Positions 29,831 to 57,302 of a DNA stretch of 64,000 bases are shown here, one piece after another (positions within the stretch are counted from its first letter, which is position 1; each line of letters begins with the position of its first letter). A program made the translations under genes and the position numbers. Under the pieces are notes generated by a model that was not told the DNA's origin, ran no database searches, and saw only the letters and a list, made by a program, of their open reading frames with translations. Origin of the DNA: Selaginella moellendorffii (taxonomy: Eukaryota > Plantae > Lycopodiophyta). Location of the stretch: positions 57,402 through 121,401 of the forward strand of contig NW_003314294.1 in the NCBI RefSeq assembly GCF_000143415.4, given 5' to 3'.

Positions 29831-31115
29831 TCAGCTTGAAGATTGTGAAAAACCTAAATCCAGCATCTGATTTTATAGCGAGCCAAGTCAAGTCCTTGTA
29901 TTCTGCATAGGATGGAGTGAACACACCAAACCATCATGAAATATTCCTCCAAATATTCCTGGTGGAGCAGGCATGGCTCGTGTCAAAACCACAAGGGTCT
30001 GCTACAAATGCCTCACAATCTTTTAGCTATAGCTAAAAGAGCAAGAATGCAGTAGAGAGCCTAAATTTGCTACAGATGAATCACTTTAGGATTCTGTTAT
30101 GAATGCAGGTTGATGTGCACTTGATGCAATGGGAATGTGGCTCACTATATGTACAGTTGGTACTGATCAATTCTAATGTCCATGCCTCGTACCGTCTGTA
30201 TCTGTTGGATTAAAAATGTTATAGCCAAGAATAGCTCTTTACCTATTGTTCTTGAGAACATGTGCACTCGACCAGAAGATTGGCCACATGTCTTAACCAC
30301 TCAGGCACAACCCCATGAAGGTCACATGCACACTTGTTAACTGCCAGAATAGCGGGTTGCCCATTCTAGACAGTAATAGGATAGTTGTTAGTCACTATTG
30401 TATCCAAATTTGTTCTCTTGCATATGCCCAATTCTGGCTTTGGTTAACCCACCTCAAACATCAAATAAAATACAAACCATAATACTGTCTATAAAGGCTA
30501 TGTGTGTTATTCATAAAATTGGTGTTCATACATCTGCCTCACAAGCACACATGCAGTCCTGGCAGATCCTGATTGGCTTGGTTTTCTTGGACACCTTAGC
30601 ATATTCCATCAAGCCCTTGGCAGAATGACTGAGAATCCAATACCCATTCTGTGGATTCTATGAGTTTATATTGTAGCTATGCCTATCTTCCATGCCCATC
30701 TATTATGATATTCTTCATATGATATAACTATTGTCCATTCAAAAAATTTGTGGCTAAGGTCTAGTTTTGATTTATATTGTGTGGAGAGGGAAAGAGGATT
30801 ATAATTTTCTTAAGTAAAATAATGTTATACTTCACTAAAACCAATGGAAAAATGCTCATTAAATACTAATCCTAGCATAACTAGTTCATTATTATAAAAA
30901 AAAAAAACTCAAGAAACAATTTATAAAGGTAGTTCAAATATAAAAGAAAAGGGCCTATGAACAAAAACACACTTTTTTCTTTAATCAATTCAAAGTTTTG
31001 GGATATCTGGGGTTATATGTCATTGAGTTTGAATAATATTAGGCTAAATGGCCTTTTGAAAAGTCTAAATTTAAAATTTTACACATATAAAAGTTTATAT
31101 AATGAAGTATCAATT

Positions 31116-31278
31116 GAATTATTATCCAAGAGAATCCACTTATAAATTATTCACTATAATGGAACTCTACATCAATGGTCTTGGAATTATTGTCCAAGAG
31201 AATCCATTTATGAGTTATTGACTATAATGGAACCATCTTTGAATCCACTTATGAGTTATTCACTATAATGGAACCATC
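31116..31278. repeat. short tandem repeat (gaatccacttatgagttattcactataatggaac-like x3)
   Basis: Copies at about 31116, 31184 and 31241. Confidence 0.8.
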
Positions 31279-34200
31279 CTTTTGCAGCATAATGAGGAAT
31301 ATTATGAGTTTGGCAGATGTAGATCCACTAATAGTAGTCCCTACCAAATAAAAAAGGTCATCCTCAAAGTAATATTAAAAATGAAAATATTGAAATGTTA
31401 AGTCATTAGTAAACTATATAGGATTTTCAAAAACATCAAAGCCTTTAGATCTACAACTCAACTTTTTGAGCCTTTTAAACATCATTTATAAAAGCAAATC
31501 TAAATTTGCATATTGTGACATTGAATATTGAGCATAACAACTACTAACAGCATGAAATACTCATCTAGAAAATCACTAACACTAAAACAATAAGCTTCTT
31601 AAAAACAAAAAAAGAGAAAGAAAAAAGGAGAGTGTCACAAATGTGTTTTATGTATCAAAAGCTATTTGCTAATGAGTATTTTCAAATATTTTTCTTTTAC
31701 TACCACAACAACAAAAGCTTGATATTACTAGACCCTTTATCAATCTTTACCCAAGTTAATTGAGAAACTAATTAGCATATATGCACTTAGATTGAAAGGG
31801 CACTAAGGAAGGAAATTCTAAATTATTATTTAGTCAACCATATTTGATATAGTGATGAAAAATTTATGTTGTTTGTTTGCATTTGCTAGTGTTAAGAACC
31901 TTACAACATTGAGCCAAGTCTCTTAATATTTGTTAAGTGATAGTTTATTGTGTCCACCAATGCACTTTCACTATCATTCTTTATGTATTGATCCTATTTT
32001 AGTTTAATTAGTTATTTATGGAAAGTGCCTAGATTTGCCAATTGGACATATTTACAAAATGTAGAGATTGTATTGAACATGATGGTGTTGGTCTCATGTC
32101 TAAATTCATAATCTAACATCATTCCATATTTAGTAAGTTTTTAAGCTTGTTATAAAAACTCTTGGGACTAGAGTGAAAGCCTAAAGCATGCTTTTATATA
32201 AAATGGGGTATATAGGGAATTCTAAATGTATAATAGGGATAATGGGTAAAGCAAGCATAATTGATCAACTTGAAACATAGTTTGATTTTCTGTTATGTGT
32301 ATATGTTCTTGTTTTACATCTGATTTAGGTCTAAGTCTAAACTCCATACCATGCTAGTTGGTGAAGTATTTATATCCTCACGTTAAATCACTTATATGCT
32401 AAATAACACTACATTTTATTTAGCTTTGTTTTGAGTGTTTATTTTGGCATTAGAATGTTAGAAACTCTAAAACTATTTCAATGTTGCTCTATGTTTTTTT
32501 TCTTTCACTCCTTAATTATATCTTCTAAAGTTTGCCTCCATCCTTTTGTTTGGCACAAGGCTCTGAAACTCAAGCCCCACTTCATTGCCTTTAGCATGCA
32601 TGTCCAAGGGTTAAAGTTCTTTATCCCATAGTAATTTATCATAATACTATCTAATGAGATTGGGTAATTAGTCTCATTGTATATAAAGAGATGAAAATGA
32701 TAATTTGAATGGGTATGCATGTGGTTGCTAGAGTAGATTTTCATTATCATTTTGAACTATATTGTATGAGAGCTCATAAGATAGATTTAAGATGTATCAT
32801 TTTTATAAGTTTATGTTTGGGCAAATGAGTGAGATATATTAGCAAAATAAGATTATACTTTAAGCTGGTAGGATTAATGTTAGCCTTTTAATGGTTACCA
32901 TAAATTGCTATTATGAATTGCTACTATGAATTATTACTATCTTACCATAGGTAGAAATAAACCTTCATCAGATTTGCTATAAGTGGTATGGTTTGTAGCT
33001 ACTAGTAAATCCTTCCTAGGTAAAATTATAAATGGATCAATCAAGACTATAGGAATTAATCTATCAATTCAAGTAGTTATTGTTGTTCTTTCTTATACTC
33101 TTTTCTTAGATTGAACTAAAGGTAGTGCAAATGTAAGCTAGAGATTTAGTCAAGTTGAATCCAAAAAGAGCATTATCATAGATGAAGGATTAAACATGTG
33201 AATCATCTTTTCTTCTCTAAAATATAATTTGTAATAAAATATGATTTTATTATTTATATTCATATCATGCAATCAAGAATCCATACATTGATATGTGTTG
33301 GTTATAGTGGTCTTTGAGTGGTGTGCCATGGGATGGAAAGTAGTGAAATGTTAAACCATTTTGATAAGTTACAATATTTAATTCTTTTCTAAGGAACTTC
33401 ATTATTGCTCTTTAAATAGCTTGGTGTTAGATTAATTTTAAGTTTAGTCAAAAAGTGAGTGGCATGAAATTGTTTATATTGTGAATGAAGTTGGTGGTGT
33501 TAAATGTTATAAATATCTTTCAATAGAGTGTGGCATTTATGTTATATTTTATGATTACATTGGCACTTGATATTAGTGTAAACCTTTGTGGTAGTAGCAT
33601 AGACTTAGTTTGTGATATCACTTGATTGATGACCAAGTCATTATATTTTTTATATTATATCCTTGTGATTATAAGCAATGTGTTTATGAAGTTTTTTGTT
33701 AAATGATAATCAACCCCAAAATGGTTGATAGTGACACTAGTCTATTTGTAGTTAATAGCATTATAATAGCTTTGACTTCTCAAAAGTGATCCATTATGAT
33801 AAGTTAGTATTGATATCTTATTTTTTTAAGAGCTTTTTCATTGAAAGTTAAAAAGGTTGTAACATTCATTTACTATAACTTGTTAATTAATCTCTTGACA
33901 ATTATAATAAATTATTAAATAGAGAAAGTGTGTAGTTGAGATATTGATATTGTTAGCACTTGTATTAGTAAAAGTGGTATTATTAAATAAAGTAATAAGA
34001 AGTTCTGATAAAAAGGTAAATGTTTTGATTTGTATATCTTCCCAGGTAGAGCAGAATAAGGAAATTTAGGTGAAATGAAGTTATGCCTAAGTTTAGGCAT
34101 TTAAAGAAAAAAGACCCAACTTAGGCAACGCTCGTCATAGACAAACATAAAGCCCACCTTTATAAAATAATTTGCTATATAAATTTTATATTTAAGAATA

Positions 34201-34826
34201 CCTCTAGCTTTACAAAGATTTCTACTACCATTTAATAATATTTATCTAAATCAACTACCTTTCTTGCAATATTTTATAATATCAACAAAACATAAAATAT
34301 TATCTAATGATTATAAAAGAAGGAGTTCCTTTATATAAAATATCAGAGCATTAATTGTGGAGTGATTCTACTCTAAGTTTTCTCTTCTAGTTTTATAATA
34401 TTTTTTATTTAAGTCTTATGTAAATTCTGACTTTTTAGGATGTCTTTTAGCATAGTATTTAAACTCAAGAATGCTTAAATCTAAGTATCCCAAAGCTTAA
34501 CTAATTAGAAAAAGGGGTGCACTTTTGTTAATATATGTAAACTCCTGAATTTGGACTTCTCAGAAAGTCATTCAGTTTAGTACTATTCTAATCTAAAGAT
34601 GCTTAACCCTAAATATTCCAAGATCCTTAACCAATTGGAAAAATGAGCTTTTTCTTTCTATATTTAAACCTCTATGGTATTCCTTTTGGTTTCTTATAAT
34701 ATATTCTTTCCCTTTATATTTAAACCCCTATAGTCTCTTACATTGTTCTTTTTAATTGCTTATAATCCAAATTCACGCCCTTGTGAAAGAAAGTTGATAA
34801 TCACAACTCTCTTGAGAGCCTTACTC

Positions 34827-35070
34827 TTTTGACACTTTACCCCTCATAACCAAATGTTAATATCAATATATGGTCTGATCTCTTATCTAACAAACAAAGT
34901 CGGATCAATCTTTTAACACTTTACCCCTCGGGATCAAATGTCAATCTTAAAATATAGTGTGATTTTTCTAACCAACTAACAAAATCAGATTTGTCTTTTG
35001 ACACTTTACCCTTTGGGACTAGATGTTAATCTCAATATGTAGTATGATTTCTTTAGCCAATTAACAAAAT
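34827..35070. repeat. tandem repeat of about 84 bp, three copies
   Basis: ttttgacactttacccct... starts at 34827, 34911 and 34996. Confidence 0.8.
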
Positions 35071-36211
35071 GGGACTTGAGAGAGGAAATATAACACTAAA
35101 CTTCATATATCATTAAGCATCATTAAGTTTTTTTTCTTCCTTTGTTTTCTCCTTTATCTTTCCTTTTCTATATTCTTGATGGAAATCATGAAAAATGAGT
35201 GGTTGAGCAAAGTTTAATGAAGGTATTATTCTAATCTATTGTTCCTCATTATATGATAACTTGTGATTAAGTTTCTTTCATCTTCATGAAAAACTAAAAG
35301 TGAGAGTTCTTTATTCAATCTTTAGAAAGCCTCATTTTTTATTGAGAGCAAAAAAGTCCTCATTTTAGAATTATTCCAATTCTAACTTTATTGAAGACTC
35401 TCCTTACTCTTTCAAAAGAATTTAATAAAGAAAGGAATTATTAAGAAAGTGCTCTTAGATACTTTTAGAGTGATGAAACCTAACTTTTACATGGCTTATG
35501 AGTGGATGCAATATTAATAGTGGGGATTAGAGTTTTATGCTTATAAAGAAGATATTCAAAACAATGATAGATTAAGTGATATCTTCATTGCAAATGTAGA
35601 ATGGATATGTGAGTGACAGTGGTGAGCAATTTTGGAATAAATTGCCTTGCTTATCATATTATATATTAAAGTCTTGTTTCCAAGATTCTCACCACTTTGC
35701 ATTTGATAATTCAATTATTGTCATTTAAAATTAAGGATTTCTCTTAGCCATTTCCAACATTCATATAAAGCATCATGAAGTGAAAAAAACTTGGTTACAA
35801 ATTGACACCTTTATGATGGAGTTACATTTGAGGATACATACCACCATAGCAATTTTCCTTATACCAATCCAAGAAAAAATATAAAAAAGGTCTCTAAACC
35901 CAAATATACATACAACCCATAAACTCTACTGGTCAGCTCTTGTAGATTTGGATGAGCACAGGCTTTGATGGTTAGGGGGCTCAAGCTTTTTGGCAGATGC
36001 GGCAGTAGCAGAGAGTATCGCATCCGGACACACTGGGGATTATACCAAGTCAAAGGAGAAGCAATGCTTTGCAAAGCACACATAGAGTTCGGCAGCCAGA
36101 TGAACGAATATCGGCAAACAAAACGAAGTCTTAATCTAGGGATTTGCAGGCTTTGAACCAAAGAAGCAAGGAAAAACGGAGTACGACAAAAACTCTTCAC
36201 TGCCGTTTGGT

Positions 36212-36623
36212 CTCATCTTGCCAATGGAGCCACCCGAGCAGCACATCCGGCAGCTTCCCGTTGATAAAATCACCGTGGCTGAGGAGTCGTCGAGTTCTTC
36301 CGGCTCAGAGCTCGTTCTCTACAAGTAAGTTTCTCCCGTACGTAGAAAAGAGAAGTTTGTCAATGACTTAGCCAACTCGCTCTTCACTTTTTCTTTCTCA
36401 GGAGAATCACAGAAGTTAAAGAACAGCGCCAGAAGGCGGTCGTGGAATTGATCTGTACTCTCTATTCGTCCAAAAGTTCCTCGACCCGAGGCTGGCTCTG
36501 GTGAGATCCCGAGCCTCACAGTGAACGAGAAGGTGGACGGCAACTGTCAATCCGTTCACGGCAACATGTAAAATCCATGGATCCACTCGGCCGAGAGGTT
36601 ACCACGGATGATCCTTGGCCGCC
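36212..36623 (+). pseudogene. inverted degenerate copy of part of the DUF760 gene (exon 1 end, intron, exon 2 start)
   Basis: Aligns by eye with the reverse complement of about 38809-39241, including the intron (gtaagtttctc...tttctcag), with indels. Confidence 0.9.
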
Positions 36624-36870
36624 GTTTTGAGTGAAGATTGTCAGCATCGTGTTGAGCGATGCCATGTTCTAAACGCGGCAGTGTAAGTGGCAAAATCATC
36701 AAGCTCTTGAGAGGAGTCGAGTTTTCCCGCAGCTGGGATGGATTGACTTGTATTGGAGCATGAGAGTGGCTTTTGTCTTGACAATTAAATCCAAAACTAG
36801 CTTCCTGCCTTGGGAATGTCCAGTGTAATATTATTATTTACTATTCATTTCCTGAAATTTTACTAAGAAC

Positions 36871-37275
36871 TTATGAACATTCATGAAATTCAACAGTATG
36901 TTCAGCATGTTCAAAACAACCTCTGAAGGACCACATATACCAACCGCCCCAACCTGTAGTGGTATATTTTGCTGCACCAGTAAAAATTATTACATGATAA
37001 GTTTCATAACCCATGGAGAAATCTTCACTTTCTATTATTGGATTTGGATCTGTTTTTTCGTTGAAGTCGTTCTCATTTGCTTGATTATATATAAAAATAT
37101 TTACCTTTTTTTTTTTGAGTTTTGAGTTGTAATAATCTAATTTACACATCATAGAACTTTGCATATTTACAGGATTCCAACAATGGTCAAAAGTTTGAGC
37201 AATAGTAAAGATTATAGAACATGTAAATCCTAACACCAAAATAAGGATGAATGAACAAAACTTTACTAATCCCAT
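36871..37275 (-). CDS. small secreted protein of unknown function (134 aa), paralog A
   Basis: Hydrophobic signal peptide, four conserved mature Cys, intronless, clearly homologous to 40272-40685. Confidence 0.85.
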   Translation of the reverse strand: MGLVKFCSFILILVLGFTCSIIFTIAQTFDHCWNPVNMQSSMMCKLDYYNSKLKKKKVNIFIYNQANENDFNEKTDPNPIIESEDFSMGYETYHVIIFTGAAKYTTTGWGGWYMWSFRGCFEHAEHTVEFHECS

Positions 37276-38163
37276 ATTTGAAGAGAATTTTATTATGTCT
37301 ATTACACTTGTTGTTAAATGGAAATGGACTATGATTTAAATGAAGTTTCAACAATAAGGACAAAAAACATTGTTAACACTTTCTTAAGTTGATTTAACAG
37401 TACTATGATACCAAAACACCAGCTGTCTCTTGTTTTTATTTTTCTCCTATTATTCTCTCTCTATGTATGGTACTTGTATTGGATTTTTTTAAGCTTAGAA
37501 GAAAATTATTTCCCAAGAAATGCTAGTAAATACAAAAAATGTAAATTTTTTTTGGCAATTTTGATATTTATACATAATCTTACCAGGACAACATGAACCA
37601 TCCTTTGTATTATGAGTCTTGATAATCTTAATTTATCCCTCTCACTATGCTTTATGATTTTAAGAACAGTAATATATTACTACTTGGACAAAATATATTA
37701 CTAAATTAATATATTACTAAATTTTTTATTAATATAGATTCAGTATTGATGTGAAGAAATCTAAAGCACTAAGATTTTAAGCAGATAAAAGAAAAATGTG
37801 TAACTAAAAGTAGCTATTATTAATATATATGTAGTTAATGACTTTTTAAATCTTGAATTGAATTAGTAAAATACCATATCATGTTTTCTAAGGTATGGAT
37901 TAAGACATTTAATTTTATATAATTGTCTACCTGTCTACTATTTGCCAGAAAATTCATTATAAACTATTATTTAACTATTTTACTCAATTAACCTAGTAAG
38001 GTTAAAATTGCAAAATTAAATTCTAGATTTTTGCTAGAGTATATATATAAGGGCATTCCAAAGATGTAACATTCAATCAACACAGTTTGAAAAGAAGCTG
38101 GTGCTCGCAAGCTCCAATACAGATTGCTACAAACTCCAAGTTCAAGGGGGTGTCACAGACATC

Positions 38164-39593
38164 TTACCCAACCAAGTTGTAGTGAGAATCAACGTGAGCC
38201 TCAGCGTCCCACAAGAAGCTCCCAAACACCACCGCTTCCGTCACCAATCTCCTCAGCCCGGACAAGCTGATGGTAAACGAGTCACCGGCGAGCAAAACCA
38301 CGGATCCATCCGGGGCGATCTCCGCCTCGGGCTTGCCAAACAGCGCCTGTGTCTGCCTCTCCACAACGTCCAAGCTCTCCTTGCAACGCAGCGTCGCAAA
38401 CCTCTGCAAGCTCTCCGGGTCCAGCGACATGACATAGCTCTTGAGCTTGCTCGGCTTCCATCCCAGCTGCGGGAAAACTCCGGATCCTCCAAGCCCGCCT
38501 CGAGTGGTCGACGATTTTGCCGCTTGCATCGCTTGCACTGCCGCGTTTGCCTCGGCCGCCAGCTTCTCTCCCTCTGCGTCAGTCTTAAAGTCGAGCTCCT
38601 CGGACACTCCCGGCCCTGACTCCACTCCTTGTTCTTCGTCCTCGTGTTTGTCGCTGCTCAGAGCTTTCTTCATGCTCAGGTCGAGCTGATATCTCTGGTC
38701 GAGACGCCGGAGGAAGTAGCCAAACACCACCGTCGCCGCATAGAGATGGCCGATCTTCATCTTGCTGGCTTGGACCAGAGTGTATGGCTCTTGGTAGTGC
38801 GGCGAGGGGCGGCCGAGGATCATCCCGAGGTGGTCTCTCACGACCTCAAGAACCTCGGCCGAGTGGATCGATTCCATGTCGCCCTGCACGGATTGCCAGT
38901 TGGTGTCCACCTTTTGGTTCGCGGGGAGGCTCGGAATCTTGGGAACCAGAGCCAGCCTCGAGTCGAGGAACTTTTGGACGACTAGAGAATAGATCACTTC
39001 CACGACCGCTTTCTGGCGCTCCTGTTCTTTAACTTCCGCGATTCTCCTGAGAAAGGAAAATAGAAGAGAGAGTTGGCTTACGTCTTTCCATTGACAAACT
39101 TCTCTTTTCTACGTAAGAGAGAAACTTACTTGTAGAGGACGAGCTCTGAGCCGGAAGAATTGGTCGACTTCTCAGCCGCGGCGTTCTTATCAGCGGCAAG
39201 CTGCTGGATGTGCTGCTCGGCTGCTTCTAGGAAGAGATGAGGATGGCTCTGGAGCAGCGAGACTAGGAACTGGCCGATGGGCGACTCGGGCTCCCAAGGA
39301 CCGACCATGGAAGTGGCACTACTTCTTCCACTCTGAGCTTTGACAATGTGACACGGACCTCTTCCCGGCCTGGAAAACCCATTTTTTATCCTCAGCGAGT
39401 CCCTCTTCCCAAAGAAACTTGTGGAAGCCTGCGAGAGAGACGAGAGAGGGAGCTCAGATCTAGCCACATCTTGCCCAAATTTCCCTACCGTGAAGTGGAT
39501 GCTGCGCTTGGCACCGACGCTGGATTGCTGCGCCCGGTACGAGCTGCTCGCAAATCCGCCGCTGCTGGAAGATCCCACTTGCACTGCCGCCAT
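38164..39593 (-). CDS. DUF760 / UV-B-induced At3g17800-like plastid protein
   Basis: Exons 39593-39130 and 39046-38164; PESPIGQFL...HPHL, LYKRIAEVKE.ER..AVVEVIY, LYAATVVFGYFLRR, ERQTQALFG and EAVVFGSFLWDAE. Confidence 0.92.
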
Positions 39594-40271
39594 CGCCGAG
39601 ACCCGCCGAGACCGCCTCACGCTCAGACCTAAAAATGAAAATCTCACGCGGCCTTTTGACCCTTTGGTGTCGGAGGAATCCACGTGGCTGCTTCGCAATG
39701 TTCCACGTCGGTCAAAATTCTATGATCCACTAGTTCGTTCGGTGACTAGTTGTTAACATATGTAAAAGGAATATTGGGTGTGGAATCAACTCCATATACG
39801 AAAGTGTTAAGTGGATTAATTTGTAGATGGATTGCTAGAGCACAAATGAATCGATTCCATTCGATTCGTTTGTCCCTTGCTAGATTTTATGTCAAGTTTT
39901 GATTATACATGTAAGCACCAAGAATCTCCAGCTAGCTTTCTCCAAGTTTTCAATGATACTCCCAGCATCCAGCACTATCACTAAGTTTAGAGCTGCCTAG
40001 TCCTACATTAACATTGGTCAATCTTACAAATATATTTCGTAATTGGATTTTAGTTGTTGGCGCTAGAAAAATTCTAAACACTGCAAGATTTTATAATGTT
40101 TATTTGTATTAAAATCTGTTGTTCTAAACCTACTGAGAACCATAGGAGAAAGATTTTTACATGTGTCTATATAATTCATATACACTGTTTCTCATAAATG
40201 GTATCTGAGCTTTTGTGTTTAGTTTAATATTTTTATTATATACAAATACAACGTATTCATGCTTTCCGCCC

Positions 40272-40685
40272 ATGGCATTTCCAAAGTTTTATTTATTTAG
40301 TTTTTTTTCACTTTTACTGTATACAAGTTTTATAATTGTTACTCTTTCTCAAGGATTTAATCACTGTTGGAATACTGATTGGAAAAAAATAATGACTTGT
40401 AAATTAGATTATTACAGATCTAAACATAAAGGAAATGCCTATATATTTATATATAACAAATCAAAGTCTTTCAAAGAAGCAATAACTCCAAATCCAATAG
40501 AAGAAGCAGATGATTTTCAAATAGACAGTGATGATTTGCAAGCAATAGTTTTTATTGGCACAGCAAAATACACCACTACTGGTTGGAGTGGCTGGGATTG
40601 GTGGTCTTTTACAGGTTGTTACAAACATGTCGATCATACTGTTGAATTTTATGAATATGGACCAAATAAGAATTGTGAAATTTAA
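40272..40685 (+). CDS. small secreted protein of unknown function (137 aa), paralog B
   Basis: MAFPKFYLFSFFSLLLYTSFIIVTLSQ signal peptide; shares HCWN, CKLDYY.SK, IFIYN, PNPI, AKYTTTGW.GW..WSF.GC and HTVEF with paralog A. Confidence 0.85.
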   Translation: MAFPKFYLFSFFSLLLYTSFIIVTLSQGFNHCWNTDWKKIMTCKLDYYRSKHKGNAYIFIYNKSKSFKEAITPNPIEEADDFQIDSDDLQAIVFIGTAKYTTTGWSGWDWWSFTGCYKHVDHTVEFYEYGPNKNCEI

Positions 40686-41109
40686 TATGAATTCCTCTTG
40701 TACTTTATATTTTATAAAATAATTTGCTAAGTGTTGCATGCATCAAGGCATGGTTTGCTAATTAATTATTATTTAATAATTTGATTTATGAAATGGAAGT
40801 TTATAATATGGTGAAATAAATCAGAATATACTAGAAAGTGTTTAAGAATGTTTATAAATTATAAATACAAAATTAATCTAAATGAATAACAACTGTTAAA
40901 TGGTAAAATATTCTAGAATATTCAAATAAATTCCAAGTATATTCATTAAGTCTAAGAGTAGAAAGACCAATTGATTTTATAGACCATTCTACTTGGTTTT
41001 TACTGCAATTGCCAATAATAATAGTAATACTGTTTATACACTTCTCCCACTTCCAAGGGATCTGGCTAAAAAGGGAAAAAGAAGAAAAAAGAAAAAAAAA
41101 GGGAGAGTT

Positions 41110-50530: not shown

Positions 50531-51399
50531 GAATTTGGATCCCTGGCTCCGGATTGAAAGCGCGTTCTTCCTAAGAACCCTAGCCAATAAGAAATCAAAA
50601 CTGAGCATATACAAAACGAATATACTTAAGCATACTCACCAGAATATGCTTTAGAAGGGCCAACTGCCTCCCAAGATTAGTGTTGAGTAGTTCACCAGGT
50701 TGTGCTAGAAAATGGGCTCTTCCATTGCTTCATACACAGCTGACCAAAGTATACCATAAATATTTTTGTACGGGGTTTCCAATGCTTGTCCATTTGGAGG
50801 GTGTTATTTCTTTTTCTCCAGTGAGTTTAAGGTGTTCAGCCACAACATCAAGCATGACACCATCTTCTAGGATTTCTAAAGTCTCTAAAAAAATATTCCA
50901 AGAATTGTTTTTGCATATATGCCATTTGGAAGGCATGCAAAATATTCTTTCATTTATATATTAGATACATGGTCCCACAGTGCCCACTATGAACATGAGA
51001 TCAAGAGATTTAAAAGTGTCATTTTGAAGAAGATAATAATTATAATACTCCCATCAATGGTGTCTATGTTTTCTTATTCTTGATTAATGCCTCTATTGGA
51101 ACATAGTCATCACCATGACTTATAAAGGGAGTACATAAGTATTATATCCCTTTGATTAATACATATGTGTGTCTTAAACATATAAACATCTTAAGGTTAA
51201 ACACTTTGGGGTTTGAAAAATAATTGTATATTCTTGGTATTAAAAAAGTAAAGGTAGAAGAAATATTTTTTTAAGCCAATGTTGTAAGTGGTGAGGAGAT
51301 TGTGAAGGGGCTATTAAAACAAGGGATACTAATTTGTAAATGATGGGAAAGTCTAGTGAATTTGAGGGATTAAAACTTCTTTTATCTCATAAAAATGAT

Positions 51400-53518
51400 T
51401 TTAGATATTTTTTAATTGTTGTTAAAAAGAAAAAAAGTTTTTAAGTTAGCCATTGGAAAGGAGTGGCCACTATTAAAGCAGAAATAAAGTAATATTTAAG
51501 AAGTGGTCCCCAAAGCAAAAAAATAAAATATGAAAAGTGTAGAGGATTTCAAAGATGTTGATGACACCACAAGGATGATCTTGATTAAGAGAGTCAAATA
51601 TGAAAACATTTTAAAAGTAAAAAATGCCACAACTTCAGCTGAGGTATAACGAATGTTTCATTTAATTTATTATGAGTAGTTATTGGCATCGAAAATAAAC
51701 ATATTTTGGCAAATAATAAATTATAAAAAGTAATGGAAAAAGCTTCAAAGTATAAAGTCTAACTTTGCAAATGTTATAAGGGCATTTTCTTTTTCAGGGT
51801 TGCTTTAATCCAAACAACAACTATTTAGGATTACAAATCCAACATTATAAAAATTTCATTGACATTTATGAGGGTAGAGATTTTGGAAAATTCACAAGAA
51901 AGAAGAACTTTTTAGAAAAGTTTATAACAATTGCAGCTCAATCATTAGAAAAAGGGTCTTTCAAGCTATTAAAGGTGTTACACTCAAATAAGTAGGTAAA
52001 AAAAAGGTTAGATAATTGTTCCCTGCTTTAAGTACCCGCACTCAGGCACGATATATAATAAGTATTATAGATTTTCTTTAGGAACTTTTCGGTTGCAACT
52101 TAAATCCATGTGTGTTTTGTGTCTAAATCTAATATTGGTTTAAAACGAATAAAAAAGAAAATGCACTAGATGAGCAACTTTTGGATTAAATGTATAATAG
52201 CAAATAAGGTTTTCTTACAAAAAATAACATATAGAAATTTTCCAGTAGATGTAAGCATAGCTAATGGTGAGTCTTTACGTATTGTTGTTTATGAATTTGT
52301 CTAATGGAGTTAAGAGGTGTTTTGTTTATACCTAGCTTAATTTAAAATTTGATATAAATTTCTCAACTTATAAGTCAAAGTGTTTATTCTTGTTTTCACT
52401 GCAATAGTGTTGATTTCAAGTACCTAAGATTTACAATTACTAAAAAAGGACTTTACTATCTCTCTTCACAACTTTAAATATTAGTAAATATAATAAATAT
52501 GATTGATGCTTCTATTTTGCATCTATGGCATGCTTGCTTTACACATGCTAAATGGTATTAAGTTAAGGAAGTCAATTCTTTAATATATAAAGTTCCCTCC
52601 CTCAATAGAGTGATAATGGACAATTATGAAGCATGTATATAGGGTAAAATGAAGAAAAAATCACTCTTCTAAAATGCCAAGACTCAAGGTAATTTAATTC
52701 TAAATTTAGTTTATATCTTCACTAAGTAAATCCTGAATGAAACTTGTTATTATTTTCTAATTACTAATGATTTTTATTGTTTCTCAGCCATGATTTTCCT
52801 AAATTAAAAGATCAATAAATTTCATAATTAGATTAAGTATGTGGAGCACAAGTTTGCTTGCACCTTACATACTTTCTGAGTGGATAGAGTATATAAATTA
52901 ATCTTTAAAAAATTCCAACTCATCTTGCATTAAGATGGTTTTCATACTTTTGGTTTTTGCAATTATTATTTAGTTGTAGAGTAGAAAAGAATGATTTTTT
53001 AAATGGAGAATTGGAGCAATTAATATACATTCAATAATCTCATACTTTTGAAATGGAAGGCAAAGAGACTTATATGTTTAAGTTAAAATAATCCATCTAT
53101 GGTTTTAAACAATCCTTGTAGTATACTATTTTAAATAGCTTTTTTCTAATGTTGAGTTTCTACACATTAGAACATTTATGTTTTTCACAAAAACATTTTG
53201 GTTAGAGTATACATTGATGATTTAATTATGATAGAAAAAACATTCTCTCTATATTGGCTTAAGGAATAACTTGTGAAATAGTTGAAAATGAAAGATCTTG
53301 GTAAGTTTTGCTTAGATTCTTGTAATAAAAAAGTATGAACACTTTCAATCCATTAGTGAAAGTATATTAAAACGTTTTTAAGTGAATATTAGCAATTTTC
53401 ACTCAATCATATGCTCATATTCCATCATTGCAAATTCATAAATTTTCTCAAGACGATGAATCTTGTACTAAAGGGGAGAAAAATAAATGCAAATTCTTTC
53501 ATATCAAAATATTATAGA
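51400..53518 (+). mobile_element. highly decayed Ty1/copia relic
   Basis: Residual motifs: LHLWHA (52518), EACI*GKM (52628), FLNGELE (52997), LK*SIYGFKQS (53083), YIDDL (53209) and MKDLG (53288). Confidence 0.7.
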
Positions 53519-54546
53519 TGCAGCGCACCTTATTTCTCTCCCCTTAAGCCAACTGGAAAAGGGGCAATTGCTTGATAAAAGAGCCTTTAGTGGCTATTTT
53601 ATCCCCATTTATCCCCCAAGGTTCCAAGGATCCACAGTGACAGTATATCCACACTCACCCCCCTCTCAGAGATGTCAATATCTTCATTGATTATTGACTA
53701 GCAACCCCTACTGAGCCAAGGGGAATCAACACCTCCATTTCCGCATTAAATCTACCAAACCTTCTATTGTATAGACTAGCTATTTCATGTGAGGCAATTA
53801 GTCAGTCATTAGGGGAATCAACACCTCCATTTCCACATTAAATCTACCAAACCTTTTATTGTATAAATTAGCTATTTCATGTGAGGCAATTAGTCAGTCA
53901 TCCAACCAAAGGGAACCAACACCTCCATTTCCACACTAAATCTACCAATCCTTCCATTATATAGACTAGTTATTCCATGATCTACCAAACTTTCTATTGT
54001 ATAGACTAGCTATTTCATGTGAGGCAATTAGTCATCCAACCAAGGGGAACCAACACCTCCATTTCTGCACTAAATCTACCAATCCTTCCAACACCTCCAT
54101 TTCTGCTCTAAATCTACCAATCCTTCCATTGTATAGACTAGTTGAGAAAGGACGTACACATGGATGCCTAATACATACGATTTTAAATTTAGAGGCGATT
54201 TTAAATTTAGGGGTAGGAACTACCAATCCTTCCATTGTATAGACTAGTTGAGAAAGGACGTACACATGGATGCCTAATACATACGATTTTAAATTTAGAG
54301 GCGATTTTAAATTTAGGGGTAGGAATATATCTTGCTCAAGGGTATATTATATTTTTTAAGTAGCCACTAATCAGTGGGAATCGAACCCGTGCCATTTGCC
54401 CTGATACTAACTATAACACACCTTATTTTTCTCCCTTTAAACCAACTGGAAAAAAGGGCAATTGCTTGATGAGAGAGCCCTTAGTGGCTATTTTATCCCC
54501 ATTTATCCTTTAAGGTTTTAAGGATCCACGGTGACAGTATATTCAA
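53519..54546 (-). mobile_element. TRIM-like non-autonomous LTR element
   Basis: Direct repeats of about 135 bp at 53519-53654 and 54412-54546. On the minus strand a PBS-like tagtatcagggc follows the 5' LTR (54398-54409) and a PPT gagaggggggtgag precedes the 3' LTR (53655-53667). No coding capacity. Confidence 0.75.
53720..54326. repeat. internal tandem arrays of the TRIM (about 90-bp units x4-5 and an approximately 106-bp exact duplication)
   Basis: aacacctccatttc..attaaatctacca...gtatagactag is repeated; 54114-54219 is duplicated at 54220-54326. Confidence 0.85.
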
Positions 54547-54593
54547 ATCTCACTACAATAGGAGTGATAATATCTTTAGTAGCAATACATTGT

Positions 54594-54880
54594 ATGCTTT
54601 ATTTCGTTAAAGTGGAACTTATTCAGTAAAGTGGGACATTAATTAGCATGTGTCCACATGCTATTTCCTAGTACTTAATTAATATTTATTAATATTTCTA
54701 TCAGTTTTTTAATTTATTTTTTATATTTCACAATATTATAACACAAAATCATATGAAAAGTTTTTAATTTATAAATTATAAAGGTAAGACTTCAATTTTT
54801 TATTGTTGTTATAAAAATGGCATGTGGCCACACACCATAAGTGGGATAATGAAAAGTTCCACTTTAACAAAATAAAGCAT
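54594..54880. mobile_element. MITE-like element with terminal inverted repeats of about 30 bp
   Basis: atgctttatttcgttaaagtggaactt ... aagttccactttaacaaaataaagcat; AT-rich interior; no clean TSD. Confidence 0.6.
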
Positions 54881-55518
54881 TTGTTTAAATATTGCAAAAA
54901 CTATATCAAAGGTATATCAATTTATGTAAGATTTAAAAAATCAACATTAATATATTCAATTATATTGAACAAATATCCACTCTCAACTTAAAGTTTCAAT
55001 GCACAAAGATTGAAGATATTAGTATGGATTCTTAAAAGTGATATAGGATGGTGGATGTGGATTTAATAAGGGACTTTAACAATCAAAAATCAATAATAAA
55101 GTACATTTTCATGTAGTTAAAAATAAAGAAAAGTTGCACTTTCCACCTATTAAATTGAGTATAGTGTTGTGACTAAAATATTTAAGGAATAATTGTGAAT
55201 GTGAAGATTTTACTAAGACAACAATTTTGAGATTCATAGAACACATGGAATGCAATCCTCAACCCTATTTATCAACATACACTTCAAAATATTTTTCTAT
55301 TTTATATGTGAAAGGATCTAAATGAAAGAAATTCAGTTGCTCACATATCCATAACTAACTTGATAGTAAATTTACTGACAAAGACATCCTTGCTAGTGGC
55401 TCAATTTGAATATTTATAAATCAAACTTAGGTTTAAAGGTTGAGGTTAAGTTAAGTTATGGCATATTCACTAATGTAATTTATGAAGGTAAGAAGTATGT
55501 AAGTATTGTATCCTTTTG

Positions 55519-55521
<3 letters not shown>

Positions 55522-55558
<37 letters not shown>
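55522..55558. repeat. (TA)n microsatellite
   Basis: TA run. Confidence 0.95.
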
Positions 55559-55561
<3 letters not shown>

Positions 55562-57302
55562 TGCCTATATATTTTGTCTCAACAACCCCTACTTCATACA
55601 ATGTTGTGGAGGGTGATGGTGTCTTAGTTGATGAGAGTCATGTAAAGAGTTGGAGTAGCAATAACGGTAGTGGCATGAAATTTTGTTATGGTCATTTGGC
55701 ATAATTGCCACTTTGAATCATTCTATAGGTGATTGATCGAAATGTAAGTTGTGATAAGGTGTTATGGCAATAGTGTGGTGGTGTCATAAAAGTTTGAATT
55801 TAGTAGTGTCATGTGGTTGGTTGGAGCTGTGAGTAAAGAGTCATTAGTGGTCATTATGAAAGGTTGCAATGGGGATGTAGCTATAAATTGAAATTATGGA
55901 GTTGTTGGTTGAAAGCTATGGTATCATATGTTTCTCTAAATTGTAGTTAAGCTTGAAAACATATTGTATCATTTGCTTAGCATGGGGCACAAAACTAAGT
56001 TTGACATGAAATGGTCAAAGATGCTTTACAAGACTAGCCAATTGTTTATGACTATTAAGTTATGGTAAATGTAAGCTAGGTTGTTTTCCCACTCATAATC
56101 ATTTTATTCTACAGGATTTAGGATGATTAGTTAGGCATTACCATATTGTGTATAGGCTTGGGAGGTGAGTGTGTTGTGTTGTCTATAAACTATATATTTA
56201 AGTGGAGGATCACCCATGGGGAGCTTTGCTATATTGTTAACAAGCCAATAGTTGTAAAATAGAGTTGGGAGTTAATATAATGCATGTATAAATGGCTAGT
56301 TTAGGAATATAAGTTTAGCTAGTATTTTTTATTTTTATTATTAAAATTTAACACCATTTCAATTTTTAATTTTAAGTTATATTGAATTAAATAGTCCTTT
56401 TAAAACTCACAACTATTAAGAGTATTTACTTAAAAAAATGCCACTAGAGTATGACTATTAAGGAAATGGCCACTAAATAAAGCTTCATGAGTTAGAAAAA
56501 TATTTGATTAAATTTATATTTAGTTTTAAAGTTCATTCATGCTAATTATTAAAAATTGAATAAATTATTTTTGAAGTATTTTCAACTTGAACAAGAACCT
56601 TCATTCTCTTTACTTACCATAATAATATAACTTATTGACAATGATTTATGCTTTATTATGCTATTGATTTTAAGGTTATTCATTCAAAAATCATACACAC
56701 TATTGACATGAACTATTTTATATTTTATTTTTTTTTACAAATTTTACATTTCAGAATAGTGTTTTTATACTAACATTATTATGTTGTTTAATTCTTACTT
56801 ATGCAATGCAATTTAATTTGTCTTCAATGCCTTATAAAGTGGAAAGGGTTTGAAACATAAAGAGTTTTAAGCAAAAATGTTCTCAAGATATTTTCTAATA
56901 TTGCAATTTGCATATTTGTGTTCACTTAGAATTTGCAATTCAAGCAACACTTGTTAGTTAGAGGCTTGAAACAATATATCTACTAAGGCTTGCTACCCTT
57001 AGCAGTGCCTATAGATTTGGCAGTGGGTGGCAGTAGAGTGTTCCTGCTATTGATCAAAGTACCAATTTGCTAGAGCTGTTGAAGCTCAATCTGTGTTGCT
57101 GCTTGCCCTGATGGATGAGAACCAGTACAGTTCACGCAGCACTCATGGACGTTTATAAGATATAAATTGAGCACATTCCAACAAGACGTGGTTTATGCTA
57201 AAGTATTTTCCGTCCATTAAATGGGTTCTACAGCATATTCTGGTAGTCCTTAGTTCTTATTCAACTTTCTTCCTAAACGGGCTCTAGTGATCATCGTTGG
57301 AT

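Follow-up and report, generated by a model that had tools for sequence, protein, structure and literature searches.

The 64,000-nucleotide stretch of the Selaginella moellendorffii genome analysed here (the window; all positions are counted in it) carries two small open reading frames (ORFs), ORF A and ORF B, which very probably encode distant members of the YvgO family. Reviews describe YvgO of Bacillus thuringiensis SF361, the only one with reported antifungal activity, as a secreted antifungal protein that is active against Byssochlamys fulva (PMC8703302, PMC9755354). With moderate confidence, we read the two ORFs as intact, unannotated, single-exon paralogues on a lycophyte-and-fern branch of this family, for which a role in antimicrobial defence would be the likeliest. 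The features of the two ORFs are listed below, where the probable signal peptides were placed by hydropathy and the -3/-1 rule and the conserved cores by the invariant columns of alignment A4.

36871..37275, minus strand: ORF A, putative YvgO-like secreted-type protein, single-exon coding sequence (CDS), 134 amino acids plus stop; assigned by homology (36.4 bits with a hidden Markov model (HMM) built from bacterial YvgO proteins only)
37198..37275, minus strand: probable signal peptide of ORF A, residues 1-26, cleavage after TIA and before QT
36886..36984, minus strand: conserved C-terminal core of ORF A, F-x9-G-x2-GW-x2-W-x-F-x-G-x8-V-x-F, mature residues 72-104; predicted local distance difference test score (pLDDT) about 80-93
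40272..40685, plus strand: ORF B, paralogue of ORF A, single-exon CDS, 137 amino acids plus stop; 18.3 bits with the bacteria-only YvgO HMM
40272..40349, plus strand: probable signal peptide of ORF B, residues 1-26, cleavage after TLS and before QG
40551..40649, plus strand: conserved C-terminal core of ORF B, mature residues 68-100

Two unannotated paralogues with predicted secretion signals

ORF A and ORF B diverge in orientation and flank a DUF760 gene. A first-pass annotation of this DNA had already picked them out, and the coordinates, strands, shared motifs and four Cys that it gave were all reproduced; the length of ORF B is counted from the ATG chosen there. By BLASTP the two proteins are 48% identical and 62% similar over 132 residues (E 2e-42), and their alignment contains the common motifs HCWN, CKLDYYxSK, IFIYN, PNPI, AKYTTTGWxGWxxWSFxGC and HTVEF together with four aligned Cys. 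A six-frame search of the window found these two copies and no third. Neither ORF, with either start, occurs in a collection of 15 billion proteins, and both are therefore unannotated. The CDS of ORF A includes an 11-base run of A (37106-37116, coding strand) which encodes KKKK.

The signal peptides proposed in the first-pass annotation are supported by hydropathy and by the predicted cleavage sites. Residues 6-25 are strongly hydrophobic in both proteins (mean Kyte-Doolittle value 2.5 in ORF A and 2.0 in ORF B, against -0.7 for the remainder); a Lys precedes this segment, TIA/Q or TLS/Q follows it, and the small residues at -1 and -3 fit a cleaved signal peptide. The mature proteins have calculated masses of 12.8 and 13.1 kDa, isoelectric points (pI) of 5.4 and 5.7, four Cys, and four or six Trp. 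Only 4 or 11 codons separate the VEF motif from the stop, and the single small domain ends just after V-x-F. The fern and bacterial relatives described below likewise begin with secretion signals. Since a cleavable signal peptide is predicted, the acidic products of about 13 kDa are probably exported to the apoplast.

Homology of ORF A and ORF B to bacterial YvgO

The first-pass annotation had pointed to a likeness to the GDGGWxNWAFxG motif of small bacterial 'stress proteins', and this likeness turned out to reflect real homology. A bacterial set was collected by scanning a bacterial and archaeal genome collection for back-translated GDGGWxNWAF, which gave 89 loci where the chance expectation was estimated at far below one. 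The loci came from Bacillus, Streptomyces and other actinomycetes, cyanobacteria, Paenibacillus and Vibrio, and in most of them the motif was C-terminal in an ORF of 115-190 amino acids with a signal peptide. Exact look-ups in NCBI and UniRef showed that members of the set are named 'stress response protein YvgO', 'stress protein' or, in B. thuringiensis, 'Antifungal protein'. In a profile-profile comparison by hhalign, the plant alignment (A2) matched 20 non-redundant bacterial YvgO proteins (A3) with a probability of 97.3% and E 2.6e-11 over 84 columns, and the alignment extended to the last residues of both families. The bacteria-only HMM gave 36.4 bits for ORF A, 18.3 for ORF B and 18-27 for the fern relatives, while the best of 3000 shuffled decoys reached 8.4. 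Reciprocally, an HMM made from the two Selaginella proteins alone ranked all 20 bacterial proteins above 3000 shuffled decoys. Nine columns were invariant in all 26 plant and bacterial sequences (F72, G82, G85, W86, W89, F91, G93, V102 and F104 in mature ORF A numbering), and this C-terminal skeleton of F, G, GW, W, F, G, V and F at fixed spacing, common to ferns and bacteria, is present in both ORFs. Because the profile-profile comparison, the reciprocal HMM tests and the invariant columns agree, we consider the homology between the plant proteins and YvgO, which spans almost the entire mature domain, to be solid.

Several other searches did not reach the family. ORF A and ORF B had no match in Pfam or NCBIfam at E up to 10. 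A word-based homologue search with ORF A found nothing, an ESM Atlas search with ORF A gave no usable match, and a word search with the plant profile returned ferns only, with no bacterium at E up to 0.1. Sequence searches of the PDB with ORF A, the plant profile and the bacterial profile gave nothing credible, the lone match being a nucleotidase at E 0.58. The two ORFs had been described as an unrecognised family; that description holds only in part, because they fall in a lycophyte-and-fern branch of YvgO whose fern members are stored in databases as 'hypothetical protein'.

The plant and bacterial proteins have in common their layout (a signal peptide, then a single small domain), the elements K..M and NV/I-M/F-V/I-x-N, and the core F..G......G..GW..W.F.G.F.....V.F running to the protein end. 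They differ in several respects. Identity between Selaginella and bacteria is just 19-27%, and nothing in ORF A and ORF B aligns with the N-terminal DVLGI...NRSG segment of the bacterial proteins. The D and N of GDGGWxNW are replaced, giving GWGGWYMWSF in ORF A and GWSGWDWWSF in ORF B, and in the plant proteins the motif is preceded by one additional residue. ORF A and ORF B also carry four Cys that are absent from ferns and bacteria, their host is eukaryotic, and their signal peptides are of the eukaryotic type.

The family may touch Pfam PF25411 (DUF7888). Ten of the 26 proteins in alignment A4 gave weak matches to it, the Atlas labels YvgO clusters with PF25411, and in four bacterial proteins scanned singly the match fell at the GDGGW region (best E 0.036). 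All of these matches, however, lay under the cut-off (13 bits against a gathering threshold of 27), and the Selaginella and fern proteins had no match to PF25411 (E up to 10 for ORF A and ORF B, E up to 1 for mature domains).

Two long bacterial repeat proteins (P0001 and P0003, Ala/Gly- or Thr-rich with GYTFAGW-type repeats) were rejected as relatives, having scored via 9-14 short stretches as repeat or composition matches. In three Streptomyces loci (L017, L021 and L025) GDGGWxNWAF lies in a longer ORF of 276-391 amino acids. The tail of these ORFs looks to us like a ricin-B-type lectin repeat (QxW), in which case a YvgO-like domain and a sugar-binding module may be naturally fused here.

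Fern relatives and the plant branch

An exhaustive HMMER search of 1.84 billion proteins with a profile of the two mature domains gave three matches. Two were the bacterial repeat proteins P0001 and P0003, and one was credible: Ceratopteris richardii KP509_15G045600 (111 amino acids, E 2e-4). A word search from the Ceratopteris protein added two Adiantum proteins (Adiantum capillus-veneris GOP47_0001366 and Adiantum nelumboides L7F22_006840) and two JGI fragments, all labelled hypothetical. All of these align with ORF A and ORF B over the full length of the mature domain, and the fern proteins are the nearest relatives found. The named ones (P0002, P0004 and P0005) all belong to the Pteridaceae, in Ceratopteris and two Adiantum species. 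The first-pass annotation had recognised no angiosperm family of this kind, and no seed-plant or angiosperm relative turned up in the searches made. A limited literature search found no paper linking YvgO to Selaginella or ferns.

Ferns and Selaginella share the plant-specific GW.GW (with W for the bacterial D), F.G(A/T)A, WN or WD near the mature start, and equal length. On the other hand, the fern proteins are only 23-31% identical to those of Selaginella, retain the N in ENWAF, lack the four Cys, and have a longer spacer after the signal peptide.

A maximum-likelihood tree was built from 88 columns of the six plant sequences and sampled bacteria. It is unrooted, long-branch attraction is possible, the bacterial sample is biased by the motif bait, and the named ferns come from the Pteridaceae alone. 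All six plant sequences fell on one side of a branch with 97/97 support, and the distances were about 5.8 substitutions per site between plants and bacteria and about 2.2 between Selaginella and ferns. The tree thus suggests a lycophyte-and-fern branch of the YvgO family that includes ORF A and ORF B. The 97/97 branch, together with the plant-only features (W for D, F.G(A/T)A and one extra residue), points to a single old plant lineage; such a lineage, predating the lycophyte-fern split or at least long-standing, would fit the data, and a recent insertion would not. Since the plant sequences cluster together on a long branch, away from the sampled bacteria, any transfer would have been ancient rather than recent. 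The ultimate source may be bacterial, to the extent that an unrooted tree with long branches, bait-biased bacteria and one fern family allows.

Selection on the two reading frames

The first-pass annotation had taken the open frames as a sign of selection, and codon analysis bears this out. Nucleotide similarity between the two loci is restricted to the CDS, with a local alignment score of 149 against a shuffle mean of 13 (z = 82), while the flanks, 500 bases upstream and 500 bases downstream of each, are similar at the level of chance (z = 0.1 and 0.6). The two ORFs are 73% identical in nucleotides, and all internal gaps in their alignment are whole codon multiples. Simple estimators of the ratio of nonsynonymous to synonymous substitution rates (dN/dS) were discordant, ranging from 0.17 to 0.8. 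Because extreme base bias made these estimators disagree, we fitted the Goldman-Yang (GY94) codon model with F3x4 frequencies by maximum likelihood and tested it against omega = 1 by a likelihood-ratio test. Omega was 0.40 for the whole CDS (p = 0.002) and 0.32 for the mature part (p = 0.001), with a divergence of t = 1.37 substitutions per codon. The dN/dS comparison of the paralogues, put forward at the outset as a check, therefore gave a value significantly below 1.

At the observed divergence, 4-7 stops per copy are expected under neutrality, and the probability of no stop is 0.001-0.015 each for ORF A and ORF B. Elsewhere in the window, 11.3 kb of AT-rich DNA contains no stop-free run longer than 104 codons and nothing coding-like. 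With omega below 1, similarity confined to the CDS, gaps of whole codons, and no stops where 4-7 would be expected, both frames, judged from their sequences, have been maintained by selection through most of their separate history; present-day expression is a separate matter. We consider it likely that both genes were functional over most of that time.

AT-richness and CpG loss

Both ORFs lie in AT-rich islands with the following properties.

36830..38080 (approximate borders), no strand: AT-rich, CpG-depleted island with ORF A and its flanks; G+C content (GC) 0.24 and CpG observed/expected 0.0 in 37276-38050
39900..41000 (approximate borders), no strand: AT-rich, CpG-depleted island with ORF B and its flanks; CpG observed/expected 0.0 in 40686-41000

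The first-pass annotation was right that the two ORFs are far more AT-rich than their neighbours: GC is 0.31 in ORF A and 0.29 in ORF B (0.24 and 0.18 at third codon positions, GC3), against 0.49-0.62 in neighbouring genes (GC3 0.51-0.79). In and around both ORFs, GC is 0.22-0.31. The CpG observed/expected ratio is 0.32 in ORF A and 0.12 in ORF B, with an excess of TpG and CpA, compared with 0.92-0.96 in the gene-rich DNA of the window. Of the AT-rich stretches measured, only the 322 bases upstream of ORF B stood apart, with a ratio of 0.53; the others had values of 0.0-0.18. Two large AT-rich islands elsewhere in the window (30500-35800 and 51000-57000) have a GC of 0.29 and CpG observed/expected of 0.06 and 0.18, and hold no ORF longer than 81 amino acids. 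The composition of the window is sharply divided into two compartments, AT-rich CpG-poor islands and gene-rich DNA with a GC of about 0.5.

On the evidence of base composition, the CpG loss in the islands is the kind of signature left when cytosines are methylated and deaminated over long periods in the germline of the host. Because the islands bear this signature of the host itself, also where they hold no genes of this kind, AT-richness is no evidence of foreign DNA. The hint of a microbial origin that the first-pass annotation had drawn from it was not borne out.

Predicted structure

AlphaFold (AF2) modelling from the two Selaginella sequences alone was unusable (pLDDT 45), while the 26-sequence plant and bacterial alignment A4 gave a pLDDT of 84 and a predicted template modelling score of 0.78. 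In this model a helix at the N-terminus (mature residues 12-26) leads into a mostly antiparallel sheet, and the last strands bear the invariant core. The domain would thus be an N-terminal helix packed on a beta-sheet, with the invariant Gly/Trp/Phe core in the last strands, to which Selaginella has apparently added two disulfides via the four Cys lacking in ferns and bacteria.

A Foldseek search of the PDB with the AF2 model gave no match at E 0.001 or better. Among 48,161 chains compared by VIA-align, the best Z was 4.7, for monooxygenase effector proteins, which is under the noise level stated for the tool, and the viral structures of BFVD had no match to the model. The modelling and fold search that had been suggested earlier therefore succeeded in the first part and failed in the second, and the model points to a family without a recognisable solved fold. 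Because no solved fold matches, the structure yields no functional lead.

Neighbouring genes and the DUF760 duplicate

The gene between ORF A and ORF B matches Pfam DUF760 (E 9e-23) and lies at 38457-39223 on the minus strand, with a probable intron at 39004-39125; further neighbours are ClpC-type AAA, PPR and P450 genes. Two other ORFs of the window occur unchanged in the public protein collection, where members of their clusters carry the name Selaginella moellendorffii (SELMODRAFT_23264 and XP_024525839.1), which identifies the genome as that of this species. No functional tie of the two ORFs to DUF760 emerged, and they stand as two paralogous genes. An inverted partial copy of the DUF760 gene (36231-36502 and 36719-36742, plus strand) is 89-100% identical to it and lies tail to tail with ORF A. 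Because the probable intron is included, this copy is a genomic duplicate and not a retrocopy. At 89-100% identity, against 73% between the two ORFs, it is much younger than the duplication that gave rise to ORF A and ORF B. The idea that an ORF and DUF760 were simply duplicated and inverted as one unit was rejected, as the DUF760 fragment is on the wrong side of ORF A and far younger.

Possible function and alternative explanations

By analogy with YvgO of B. thuringiensis, we tentatively propose that ORF A and ORF B have an extracellular antimicrobial, mainly antifungal, role in defence. In such a mechanism, the products would be made with a cleavable signal peptide and then exported to the apoplast, where they might bind a surface component of the target via their exposed conserved aromatic core. 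The first-pass annotation had spoken of a lectin-like or defence 'system'; what we see is two paralogous genes, and such a system is conjecture. According to the reference given in PMC8985968, the primary YvgO paper is Manns et al. 2012.

Several observations weigh against the reading of ORF A and ORF B as working defence genes. The collection of 15 billion proteins contains no gene call for either ORF and so lends no support to their expression. Their CpG-depleted setting suggests germline methylation, which commonly accompanies silencing, and the 11-base A run in ORF A is a slippage-prone tract that could shift the frame of the gene. Pairwise omega averages over all the time since duplication, and a recent loss of function in one copy would be compatible with it. 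Selaginella lacks three residues that every sampled bacterial protein has (D and N in GDGGWxNW, R in NRSG), although for D and N this invariance is partly circular because the same motif served as bait; since these residues are lost, the activity of ORF A and ORF B may differ from that of YvgO. The mature proteins are also acidic, and in this charge-related property differ from many antimicrobial peptides. Finally, the mode of action of YvgO itself is listed as 'NA' (PMC9755354).

Some of these points would be explained if the two ORFs were silent relics, that is, former genes in methylated, decaying DNA which are no longer expressed and whose open frames reflect past selection. Extreme CpG depletion and low GC in and around both ORFs, their absence from annotation and protein collections, and the A run in ORF A are all in keeping with this explanation. 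We nevertheless think it rather unlikely, as omega is significantly below 1, neither frame has acquired a stop where several would be expected, the internal indels are all in frame, and both copies retain an undamaged signal peptide, all four Cys and the complete family core. Somewhat less probable still, in our view, is that the proteins belong to the same family and do another job, as secreted carbohydrate- or ligand-binding (lectin-like) or signalling proteins and not as antifungals that inhibit growth. A conserved surface rich in Trp and Gly is typical of sugar-binding sites, the D and N invariant in bacteria are replaced, the pI is acidic, and the orthologue in B. subtilis bears the name of a stress protein and not of a toxin; yet neither a lectin family nor any other Pfam family was matched, and no lectin fold resembled the model, the best VIA Z being within noise.

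Two further explanations, one of origin and one of family, fare worse. If the genes had recently been acquired by horizontal transfer from an AT-rich microbe or virus, and the islands were the foreign DNA itself, this would account for a family that is otherwise bacterial, for a codon composition very unlike that of neighbouring genes, and for a patchy distribution among plants (Selaginella and Pteridaceae ferns only). The data give it little support, however, and we consider it very improbable: no close microbial relative was present among the 1.84 billion proteins, the plants form one group in which Selaginella joins the ferns at a long distance from the sampled bacteria, the CpG loss is common to other AT-rich DNA of the window which holds no such genes, the two copies already differ by t = 1.4 substitutions per codon, and no viral fold matched. 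An assignment to the plant S-protein homologue family (SPH, Papaver self-incompatibility S1) arises from the UniRef name 'S-protein homolog' for the Adiantum relative P0004, and SPH proteins are indeed small, secreted, intronless and contain Cys and Trp. We regard this assignment as the least probable of all. The strong homology is to YvgO instead, and identity with SPH (Self-incomp_S1) was rejected because ORF A, ORF B, P0002, P0004, P0005 and P0006 had no match to PF05938 or any other Pfam family at E up to 10.

Returning to ORF A and ORF B as members of an old plant branch of YvgO, a bolder extension would be that early vascular plants co-opted a bacterial secreted antifungal protein, and that Selaginella has since multiplied it into an unannotated, hidden arsenal of many copies that lies in methylated, fast-decaying AT-rich islands and is expressed only on infection or at particular life stages. 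We offer this as a speculation that is unlikely to hold. Fungi keep their effector genes in the compartments of a 'two-speed genome', and an arsenal of this kind would be the plant counterpart.

Implications

The analysis indicates that gene finders pass over AT-rich, CpG-depleted islands of the S. moellendorffii genome in which selected genes sit, and that AT-richness in this genome should not count as evidence for foreign DNA. A YvgO-like plant branch is invisible in the present annotation. If the proteins are made and active, a bacterial-type secreted antifungal family would have a plant branch at least as old as the lycophyte-fern split. This would add a class of defence proteins that seed plants seemingly lack, and with it a small disulfide-stabilised scaffold without a solved fold.

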